NCBI GenBank assembly: GCA_002269645.1
Contig: NIVC01002498.1
Location: forward strand, 1 to 64,000
DNA from: Macrostomum lignano
Lineage: Eukaryota
Direction: 5' to 3'
Length of the DNA stretch: 64,000 bases
In this document: piece after piece, positions 22,888 through 24,807 of the stretch
Position numbering within the stretch: position 1 is the first letter of the stretch
Layout: each line of letters opens with the position of its first letter
Program-made: the position numbers and the translations under genes
The notes under the pieces: generated by a model
Database searches by the model: none
What the model saw: the letters and a program-made list of their open reading frames with translations, nothing else
Told to the model about the DNA's origin: nothing

Positions 22888-24807
22888 TCAGGCGCAGGTG
22901 GACGCCGGGCCCAGCAGCCGGATGTCCACCCGTCCGTCCGGCTGCTCGTTGCCGCCCGTCGCGCCCTGGACGCTGGTGGCCTCGCTGGCCGCGAAACTGC
23001 CTCCCCCGCCGCCGCCGGTCGCGCCTCCGCCGCTGGCACCGCCACCCGAGTAGCCGCCGCCGCCGCCACCCCCGCCAGGGCTGCTGGTCTTCTTGCCGCC
23101 GCCGCCGCCGCCGCCGAAGCCTCCTCGTCCAGCCTGGCCAGTGGAGGAGCCGCCGCTCCACCCACCGGCCCGGGAGGCGCCGCCTTCGCCGCTGGTGCCG
23201 CCGCCGTGCGCCCCGCCGCCCGTCAGCCAGCCGGCACCGCTGCCGCCCTTGCCGCCGCAGCAGGTGCTGGAAGCAGCCGGAGCGCCGCCACCAGCCACGC
23301 CGCCGCTGCCCTGGTGGCTGTCCGGCACCGCCGACGGCGTACCGTCCGGCCCGACGACTCCCGGCGATCCCGCCGACGTCTCCGCGGCGCCGCCACCGCC
23401 GCCAGCCGCTAGCAGCAGCGAAGCGGTCGCAGTCTCGTACACGAAGCTGCCGCCACCGCCGCCAGCTCCGAAGCGGCTGTCGCCGGAGTCACCACCGACC
23501 TGCCCGACGACCACCGTCAACTCGGCGTCTCCAAGTACAAAACTGGCTGATTTGAAGGCGCCCCTGCCGCCGGCGTTCGAGCCGGAATTGGAGCCGCCGG
23601 CGGCGCCCCAGGCGCGGAGTCGATAGCAGGCGTTGGGCAGAGGCGGCGAGTAGCTCTGGGGGGCCGGGCCGCTCGCCGCTGCATTGAAAGGCGGGTTGGA
23701 AAATAAATCCATGATGGCGGGAGGGCTGCGGGTCACCTTGGAGTAGCGCCAGCGCTGAGTCAATTGCGCCCATTGCGCTGACTCCTGCGCATATTCAAGC
23801 GCGTGAATACTGTACGCAGACACGCTCTCATAGACACGCTCACACCTTCCAAATCGTGGGGAAGTGCGTAGGTGTTCTGTTCGAGGTGGCAATAAAAAAT
23901 TGAACGAAAAACTGACAATCTCCCATATTCTCACACTGGAGACTCAGTGCGCCCATCAATCAAATTTGACCACGCAAGGGACTTTGGTGCAAGGTTGAGT
24001 AGATATCATGGTACTCTGCCAATGTAATCCCGCAGTGCTCACAATAGTTTGAGTAGAGCATCTTCTCAGACAGCCAGCTGCTGCAGTTCCCGCCATCCTG
24101 CATCAGCCAGAGCTGGCGCAGGTCTTTAGCGGTGCCCATCACGCAGACGGCGGCTTCGCTGACGAACTCGGCAACTACACAGTGGGCGTCGATAGCGCAG
24201 AAGAGGACACATTTGAGCGCACTGCTCGCTGGCCTGTGCAATGTTGAGACATCAGGAACTGCTTAGAGATCAGTGCGGAACTGCTTAGAGATCAGTGCGG
24301 AACTGCTTAGAGATCAGTGCGGAACTGCTTAGAGATCAGTGCGGAACTGCTTAGAGATCAGTGCGGAACTGCTTAGAGATCAGTGCGGAACTGCTTAGAG
24401 ATCAGTGCGGAACTGCTTAGAGATCAGTGTGGAACTGCTTAGAGATCAGTGCGGAACTGCTTAGAGATCAGTGCGGAACTGCTTAGAGATCAGTGCGGAA
24501 CTGCTTAGAGATCAGTGCGGAACTGCTTAGAGATCAGTGCGGAACTGCTTAGAGAGATCAGTGCGGAACTGCTTAGAAGACCTATACTAAAAATGCCATA
24601 AAAGACTCAATACGATAGATATCAAATCAGAGGTTCCAGCACACCCCTACTAGCCAACTCTAGTCACCTGACCATGAGACCTGGCGCGGACACATTTGAG
24701 CAGCACAGGTTGCGGTGCGGCAGCAGACGGTCACAGCTCGGCTGAACAGATGCGGCAGTCAGCAAGGGCAGCAGCAGCAGCAGCAGCACTTGTGCCAGAA
24801 GTTCCAT
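22888..24807 (-). CDS. Secreted protein: signal peptide + PAN/Apple-like domain + ALK/LTK-type glycine-rich domain
   Basis: Exons 24668-24807 (MELLAQVLLLLLLPLLTAAS..), 23971-24233 (SALKCVLFCAIDAHCVVAEFVSEAAVCVM) and 22888-23876 (YRLRAWGAAGG..GGRGA..LTVVVGQVGG..GGGGGSFV..LLLAAGGGGGA..GGGGGYSGG..GGGGSF..DGRVDI). Phases are compatible; the exon 2/3 junction is less certain. Confidence 0.75.
24255..24576. repeat. 22-bp tandem array in intron 1 of the PAN-GRD gene
   Basis: Unit CGGAACTGCTTAGAGATCAGTG. Confidence 0.95.

Follow-up and report, generated by a model that had tools for sequence, protein, structure and literature searches.

A secreted protein of the flatworm Macrostomum lignano combining a PAN-like module with a complete ALK/LTK-type glycine-rich domain and lacking a kinase

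Here we analyzed a stretch of 64,000 nucleotides from the flatworm Macrostomum lignano (positions 1-64000 of the 168-kb contig NIVC01002498.1, assembly GCA_002269645.1; the whole stretch is called the window below). The gene BOX15_Mlig028980g1 (Mlig028980), located on the minus strand of the window, encodes a protein of 373 amino acids (PAA57358.1, P0001), and residues ~103-373 of this protein are unambiguously a complete glycine-rich domain (GRD) of the ALK/LTK type, consisting of a TNF-like beta-sandwich and a polyglycine-II (PGII) helix bundle. We read the product as a secreted, disulfide-rich protein of two modules, PAN-like and GRD, which would have a PAN-tethered role in extracellular recognition or adhesion; this reading as a whole is held with a little more than even confidence, and its functional part taken alone with less. 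Mlig028980 is an expressed gene with an RNA-seq-derived model and is already on record as an annotated hypothetical protein. What is new here is that a flatworm protein missed by Pfam is recognised as a secreted, kinase-less protein with an ALK-type GRD, belonging to an undescribed group of animal proteins.

The span 22888..24807 is exactly the coding range of Mlig028980, and the deposited PAA57358.1 was reproduced residue for residue by joining three exons, which confirmed the three-exon gene proposed for 22888-24807 by the initial annotation, a reading of the bare sequence. Both introns are of the GT..AG type, with lengths of 434 and 364 nt, respectively. The features of the locus are as follows, with a slash marking each splice junction:

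24668..24807, minus strand: exon 1, with the ATG at 24807-24805; exact rebuild of the protein
24807-24748, minus strand: signal-peptide part of exon 1, amino acids 1 to ~20; hydrophobicity peak at residues 3-21 and AlphaFold2 (AF2) helix at residues 2-16
within exon 1, minus strand: cysteines C25, C35 and C36, the first of the PAN module
end of exon 1, minus strand: donor CAG/GTGACT, phase 2
24234..24667, minus strand: intron 1, 434 nt, GT..AG
24043..24233, minus strand: exon 2, with the PAN/Apple core C55-x3-C59-x5-C65-x11-C77 ... C97, followed by the first GRD beta-strand
end of exon 2, minus strand: first GRD strand EKMLY, amino acids 103-107; AF2 strand at 103-107
end of exon 2, minus strand: donor TATT/GTGAGC, phase 1
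23679..24042, minus strand: intron 2 as annotated, 364 nt
22888..23678, minus strand: exon 3, the remaining GRD, with the acceptor ..caatgcag/CG
22890-22888, minus strand: stop codon TGA of exon 3, 11 residues past the last GRD strand
22623..23626, plus strand: antisense open reading frames (ORFs) opposite exon 3, one of 310 amino acids (Arg/Pro-rich) and one of 177 amino acids (Pro-rich)

The two antisense ORFs were rejected as genes, as they only mirror the GGC/GCC richness of the opposite strand, which codes for Gly/Ala and in which 63 of the 89 Gly codons are GGC. Intron 1 is mostly filled by a 22-nt minisatellite, GGAACTGCTTAGAGATCAGTGC, which spans 24255-24577 with 14.6 copies and 98% matches.

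The GenBank gene models of the M. lignano assembly were built on RNA-seq, with StringTie/TACO merged with a de novo transcriptome (PMC5730564). Since the annotation is RNA-seq-derived, the joining of exons 1 and 2 to the GRD exon has transcript-level support, and the splicing that had been assumed from the sequence holds at the annotation level. The UniProt/UniRef name of PAA57358.1 is 'Apple domain-containing protein'.

The GRD begins in exon 2 and the remainder is encoded by exon 3, with a Gly content of 34% over amino acids 113-373. A homology search returned 363 proteins, and most of the best 120 carry a precomputed assignment to PF12810 (ALK_LTK_GRD). An alignment of 30 GRD sequences contained 52 invariant columns across the whole domain; the GRD of the window protein could also be aligned end to end with those of human ALK, corals, bacteria and a flatworm paralog (44 invariant columns). 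The motif series is complete, as in human ALK, between the 'Y-x-[IL]-x-A-W-G-A-x-G-G' strand and the 'G-x-V-x-I' strand at the end. When a profile made from the GRD and 29 relatives was searched against the PDB, nine matches were obtained, all of them ALK/LTK/SCD-2 (E 2.1e-13 to 2.4e-7). The AF2 model, calculated from a 72-sequence alignment, had a predicted local distance difference test score (pLDDT) of >90 over most of residues ~120-373, with dips to 62-86 at ~220-270 and to 79-84 in two later blocks. Foldseek comparison of the model with the PDB gave 21 matches with E-values of 2.3e-10 to 3.2e-6, all to ALK/LTK/SCD-2 GRDs, with template modelling scores up to 0.63 (target-normalised); the next match was at E = 5. 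The alignments, the profile search and the fold search thus bear out the claim of the initial annotation that a complete GRD motif series runs up to the stop, and in the structural check that it had suggested against ALK/LTK GRD structures, ALK/LTK/SCD-2 GRDs were all of the significant PDB matches. A search of NCBIfam gave no match. Single-sequence phmmer against the PDB returned Gly-Ser linkers of single-chain antibody fragments (scFv) only, and was discarded as a composition artefact.

The Pfam model lags behind the domain in this group. The paralog P0002 (Mlig019850) scores 23.0 bits against PF12810 at a cut-off of 24.5, P0121 24.9 bits, and the coral proteins P0024 and P0042 28-34 bits. 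The failure of PF12810 to match PAA57358.1 is probably due to composition filters and to a model too narrow to include the flatworm GRDs, which have short loops. Taking the empty Pfam result for the spliced protein and for each half as proof that the domains are absent was rejected, being overruled by the profile and fold searches.

The boundary between the two modules falls at the exon 2/3 junction. With the annotated exons, C97, the last cysteine of the PAN module, sits 6 residues ahead of the first GRD strand, and a PAN-GRD linker is essentially absent. The linker described in the initial annotation exists only with a weaker junction (donor AGA/GTACCA, acceptor tacag/T), and this part of the earlier description was not retained. 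The annotated junction uses the best donor, TATT/GTGAGC, which is strong, together with the acceptor caatgcag/CG. Its intron phase (1) is that of the single intron in the paralog Mlig019850, it retains a complete six-Cys PAN module, and it yields 'EKMLYSNYS', modelled by AF2 as the first GRD beta-strand and the counterpart of the coral 'FSNFKT' start. Because of the donor, the shared phase, the complete six-Cys module and the first GRD strand, the annotated model was kept. Among the alternatives tried, model A (426 amino acids, with a linker of ~60 residues, and close to the initial reading) uses the AGA/GTACCA donor and the tacag/T acceptor, which are weaker sites than the annotated ones, and none of models A (426 amino acids), B (459) and C (393) is present in the protein collection. 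An alignment of paralog C120 with C110 of the window protein had been considered as an argument against the annotated donor; it was dropped, as neither protein needs this cysteine to complete its Apple pattern. The exon 3 frame is open for 88 codons upstream of its acceptor, within intron 2 (23679-23942, minus strand; shuffle P = 0.018), and this stretch ends with ...MDLFSNPPFNA, a sequence that resembles or duplicates the motif of the first GRD strand (the start in corals, 'FSNFKTDG', is comparable). The open frame may belong to an alternative isoform or be left over from an ancestral GRD exon of greater length.

The N-terminal module is supported as PAN/Apple-like by its sequence and by the arrangement of its cysteines. 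The pattern C25/C36 ... C55-x3-C59-x5-C65-x11-C77 ... C97 matches nine PAN_1 repeats and two coral PAN domains column for column; when all are aligned together, no sequence deviates at the four core cysteines, and C25 and C97 take the positions of the outer Apple cysteines. One Cys pair is present beyond the six-Cys Apple set. When the translated exon 2 was compared exhaustively with 1.84 billion representatives by phmmer, the best non-self match was P0122 (E 8.8e-11, 11 stretches), a protein of 1752 amino acids with 15 PAN_1 repeats (PF00024, E 1.5e-114). The whole-protein E-value of P0122 is inflated by its repeats; single repeats match exon 2 with 36% identity and E 7e-4 across K-C-x3-C-x5-C-V-x-A-x-F-x5-C-V. 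The PAN/Apple-like, Cys-patterned module of the initial annotation therefore stands on the cysteine alignment together with the match to a protein with fifteen PAN_1 repeats.

Compared with known PAN/Apple domains (PF00024; the N-domain of plasminogen and HGF, the apple domains of factor XI, apicomplexan lectins), the module shares the six-Cys C-x3-C-x5-C-x11-C core, and its AF2 model contains a helix-on-sheet core, with a fold match that is not significant. It differs in the shorter C1-C2 and C5-C6 loops and the extra Cys pair, and lies below detection by the Pfam hidden Markov models (HMMs). The structural matches of the PAN core with the highest probability (0.87-0.89) were the plasminogen PAN domain (1.3 A root-mean-square deviation over 40 columns) and the Sarcocystis lectin SML-2 (0.7 A over 36), at E-values that are not significant. 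A comparison of flatworm and coral PAN by hhalign gave a probability of 2.5%, from alignments of two sequences each that are too shallow to inform.

The protein appears to be secreted and carries no membrane anchor. The sole strongly hydrophobic 19-mer in PAA57358.1 covers residues 3-21, where AF2 places a helix (residues 2-16), in agreement with the signal peptide described initially, and no further hydrophobic segment that could serve as a transmembrane segment was found in the protein. Neither Pfam domains beyond the two modules nor an EGF module were detected in PAA57358.1, which terminates with the GRD, and it contains 12 cysteines. The kinase motifs HRDLAARN, DFG, GxGxxG-V and DVWSFG were absent from all six frames of the 64-kb window. 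The hydrophobicity scan and the six-frame motif scan are thus in line with the earlier statement that transmembrane segment and kinase are both lacking.

The closest structurally characterised relatives are the GRDs of ALK, LTK and SCD-2 (PF12810; PDB 7NX1, 7N00, 7LRZ, 7LIR), which have the same fold, the same ordered Gly motifs and an extracellular location. Cysteines at the N- and C-terminal ends, possibly clamping the GRD, are common to ALK/LTK/SCD-2 and the window protein; in the latter, a C128-C372 clamp and a C250-C251 pair are predicted. Identity to the ALK/LTK GRD is about 32%, mostly glycines, and the Pfam model built on this family misses the window protein. Unlike ALK/LTK, the window protein has no EGF-like module after the GRD, no transmembrane segment, no kinase, and neither MAM nor LDLa; ALK's helical insert of ~35 residues is also missing. 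One option offered by the initial annotation was a soluble ALK-like ectodomain, that is, a decoy or ligand carrier whose secreted GRD binds a ligand of the Jeb/HEN-1/ALKAL type while the PAN module localises it in the matrix. Such a role would suit a secreted protein that has no signalling part and whose GRD is homologous, both by sequence and by fold, to the region of ALK/LTK/SCD-2 that binds the ligand. However, the GRD distance to human ALK (2.32) exceeds that to coral (mean 1.65) or microbial and phage (mean 1.81) GRDs, phage folds match better than ALK/LTK structures (7e-15 vs 2e-10), phage HMMs detect the domain where PF12810 does not, the helical insert and the EGF-like module of ALK are absent, and the related coral family is a big expansion with many near-identical paralogs, which is untypical of a dedicated decoy. 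No positive support was obtained for this option, and we regard it as improbable. The evidence agrees more closely with the other option of the initial annotation, namely a surface or structural protein of the polyglycine-II type that is targeted by its PAN module.

Further relatives are found in M. lignano itself and in corals. The flatworm has at least two further GRD genes (Mlig019850/P0002 and P0004). Mlig019850 has two exons and encodes a signal peptide, PAN and GRD, with 35% identity to the window protein. It occurs in two copies (NIVC01002065.1 and NIVC01000067.1) with an identical product of 403 amino acids, and each copy is nested on the opposite strand within a larger gene (product of 365-371 amino acids over ~9 kb). 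P0121 is a fused UniProt model of Mlig019850 with 787 amino acids, the C-terminal half of which looks like read-through. In P0004 the GRD follows a different Cys-rich N-terminus, named 'WSC' by UniRef and not confirmed by Pfam.

In corals, P0024 (Stylophora pistillata) and P0042 (Porites harrisoni), of 450-456 amino acids, carry PAN_1 and PF12810 above the Pfam thresholds. By Pfam, one scleractinian model has PAN, EGF and GRD, and several have EGF and GRD. The coral GRD family is a large multi-copy expansion with many near-identical paralogs and several copies per contig. Coral 'GRD-only' proteins of ~300 amino acids in ENA are prokaryote-style ORF calls of a single GRD exon, and one of these loci has a PAN_1 ORF upstream of the GRD exon. 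A coral-type locus (L005, ENA ERZ25067864) has a PAN_1-like ORF at 2459-2788 and a GRD exon at 10001-10903 with a 4.5-kb retrotransposon ORF (RVT_1, rve, SCAN) in between, and may represent a PAN-GRD gene that was disrupted or had its intron invaded.

The coral PAN-GRD proteins P0024 and P0042 and the window protein have the same order of signal peptide, PAN, GRD and stop, with no transmembrane segment or kinase. Coral GRDs (e.g. P0024/P0028, P0042) match with 40-42% identity over ~40% of the query, and in both groups the GRD is largely one exon. The coral proteins differ in an extra Cys module of ~50 amino acids (or EGF) between PAN and GRD and in two loop insertions in the GRD. In addition, the intron ahead of the GRD lies before the first strand in coral, where P0042 holds the whole GRD including the first strand in one exon, and after the first strand in the flatworm. 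Mlig028980 thus belongs to a kinase-less group of animal GRD proteins made up of the M. lignano paralogs and the large coral expansion, in which exchangeable Cys-rich modules stand ahead of the GRD (either PAN or EGF in coral; PAN-like or 'WSC'-named in the flatworm). The initial annotation had taken the architecture to be undescribed. This stands for the literature, in which we found no description of secreted PAN-GRD proteins, and does not stand for the databases, where coral proteins with PAN_1 and PF12810 and the M. lignano paralogs are present; as to whether the family is already commonly annotated, it is machine-annotated in databases, and no paper describing it was found. The only full-text mention of PF12810 that was found concerns three such genes in one fungus, with 'no hint of a function' (PMC4859500).

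The coral proteins also bear on a second alternative, in which the window protein is a purely structural, glycine-rich, cross-linked component (of eggshell, adhesive, mucus or a rhabdite-like secretion) whose PGII bundle gives rigidity and binds no specific ligand. The high Gly content of the GRD part, the cysteines of the protein, the multi-copy nature of the coral family with several copies on the same contigs, and the automatic names 'loricrin-like' and 'glycine-rich cell wall structural protein' given to coral relatives could all be read in this way. However, these names derive from composition only, the Gly residues are conserved at specific positions in the motifs of a globular fold and are no low-complexity filler, and neither repeats or cross-linking motifs outside the domain nor proteomic or expression evidence for such a role were found. 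We consider a purely structural role unlikely, though a less distant prospect than that of a decoy.

Stand-alone GRDs in microbes, mentioned in the initial annotation, were confirmed by bacterial and phage GRD proteins. The window protein is matched by the phage HMMs phrog_22713 (E 4.1e-10, residues 126-370) and phrog_7388 (E 2.1e-6). A fold search of BFVD gave 51 viral predicted-structure matches at E <= 1e-3, the best (7.2e-15) being stronger than the best ALK/LTK match in the PDB; they include cyanophage virion structural, tail-collar and short-tail-fibre proteins and proteins of giant viruses. Caulobacter phages are also among the sources of GRD-bearing virion and tail-fibre proteins, and the bacterial GRD protein P0117 is a PEPxxWA-CTERM surface protein. 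The closest match outside flatworms, P0003, has two tandem GRDs and lies in a phage-like gene block; its gene occupies 3688-5829 of a 9.2-kb Logan contig (SRR16945688, L004) and adjoins a Phage_phiTE_241_C-domain protein. Many phage GRD proteins are named 'receptor protein-tyrosine kinase' by UniProt rules, which is a misannotation. The phage and bacterial GRD proteins share with the window protein the fold, the motifs, the short loops and an extracellular or virion-surface site. In contrast to it, they often have tandem GRDs or GRDs within long fibre proteins, none has PAN, and many have an N-terminal 'FTNAGATGRxGPTQ' extension; Mlig028980 differs from their genes in having introns and host codon use.

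The relationships of the GRDs were examined by a rough neighbor-joining (NJ) tree on non-glycine columns, bootstrapped and with undefined distances capped. The window protein and P0002 were sisters with 66-88% bootstrap, and the corals were monophyletic with 99-100%. The clade of flatworm and coral received 32-52% only, and the nearest neighbours of P0001 in the tree were coral-type sequences. The question raised initially, whether the GRD derives from an animal receptor tyrosine kinase or is of bacterial or viral affinity, is partly answered by these results: the domain is farther from human ALK than from coral or microbial GRDs, and the join of flatworm and coral is not firm. Based on the distances, the NJ groupings and the phage matches, Mlig028980 is not a truncated ALK paralog.

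The likeness to phages raises the alternative that a bacterial or phage GRD was transferred horizontally in the flatworm lineage and fused to a host PAN exon. It would account for short 'minimal' loops like those of microbial GRDs and for the good matches to phage HMMs and folds; the low bootstrap for grouping with corals and the patchy distribution of the family in eukaryotes, such as the three fungal genes (PMC4859500), also speak for it. On the other hand, the gene has spliceosomal introns and host-like codon use, with a GC content at third codon positions (GC3) of 0.825 in the GRD exon against 0.82-0.83 in the neighboring SNF2 gene, and the M. lignano paralogs are several and diverged (35% identity). 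The PAN-GRD order is common to corals, whose sequences are also the NJ neighbours of P0001. In view of its introns, host-like GC3 and metazoan flanking genes, Mlig028980 is native, being neither a contaminant nor a recent transfer; a transfer in the flatworm lineage appears improbable, and if any occurred, it was ancient.

In our preferred reading, the PAN module would tether the molecule to a partner, either a glycan or another protein, located in the extracellular matrix or mucus or on the surface of a cell or microbe. The rigid GRD would offer a second surface for binding or scaffolding, as it appears to do in the virion and tail-fibre proteins of phages and in the PEP-CTERM surface proteins of bacteria. 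Since the GRD stands behind Cys-rich modules in animals and occurs in virion and surface proteins of phages and bacteria, it is suggested to be an extracellular scaffold for binding or adhesion. The product of Mlig028980 is by this analogy most likely an adhesion or recognition protein, rather than a receptor for signalling or a protein dedicated to trapping an ALK ligand.

Several points weigh against this reading. PF12810 gave no match to PAA57358.1 or to the isolated GRD even at E <= 10, and with the same cut-off Pfam PAN_1 and PAN_4 matched neither P0001 nor P0002 nor the N-terminal module on its own. In the AF2 model of the N-terminal module, pLDDT is 80-97 at core residues 22-70 and <50 in the rest, and Foldseek of the PAN core returned nothing at E < 0.4. 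The alternatives at the exon 2/3 junction might alter the spacing between PAN and GRD. Full-text literature and M. lignano supplements yielded no functional or expression data for Mlig028980 or Mlig019850, so the binding or adhesion role is drawn by analogy only. Also, to our knowledge the sole characterised function of the GRD family is cytokine binding by ALK/LTK, which leaves room for a ligand-binding role.

The genes around Mlig028980 are unrelated to it and metazoan. They include the following:

~3611-15505, plus strand: Brahma/SMARCA-type SNF2 ATPase gene with QLQ, HSA, BRK, SNF2, SnAC and bromodomain exons; 1476 amino acids annotated; repeat-filled introns
37539-40666, minus strand: adaptor-complex mu-homology (stonin/AP-mu-like) gene; exon ORF of 751 amino acids
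44218-45396, plus strand: ORF of a rhodopsin-family G-protein-coupled receptor; 392 amino acids; 7tm_1 33 bits

The window is dense in minisatellite arrays, mostly with a period of 20-37 bp and a few of 59-167 bp (39 Tandem Repeats Finder rows at score >= 100). Examples are 5506-5924, 7563-8179, 8668-9244, 9593-10631, 11007-11640 and 13791-14842, and further 16360-17271, 47015-49037, 49540-50893, 58369-60227 and 62722-63741. Several arrays lie within introns of the SNF2 gene, and long spurious ORFs result (e.g. 13674-14972, 16278-17351 and in the 47-51 kb region).

ALK and LTK are cancer-relevant receptors. We know of no experimental account of the polyglycine-II/TNF-like GRD other than as their cytokine-binding part. 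The flatworm gene, its paralogs and the coral family indicate that animals also make the GRD as a secreted, kinase-less protein with interchangeable Cys-rich targeting modules. A speculative idea, to which we assign only a slight chance, is that the secreted PAN-GRD proteins of flatworms and corals are survivors of a free-standing animal GRD that was later recruited into ALK receptors. In a variant of it, these survivors would still bind Jeb/HEN-1/ALKAL-like ligands and modulate ALK signalling extracellularly, and in that case the open stretch preceding exon 3 would point to an alternative isoform, in which a true linker separates PAN from GRD, or to a product consisting of the GRD alone. The case also exposes problems of annotation, since Pfam misses both domains of the window protein, and both phage and coral GRD proteins are labelled 'receptor protein-tyrosine kinase'.

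In M. lignano, RNA interference and in situ hybridisation are established techniques. Transgenesis is established as well (PMC5730564). The flatworm would therefore be a tractable animal for studying a kinase-free GRD and the origin of ALK's ectodomain. The same fold being common in phage virion and tail-fibre proteins, the GRD may be recast as a general extracellular binding scaffold.

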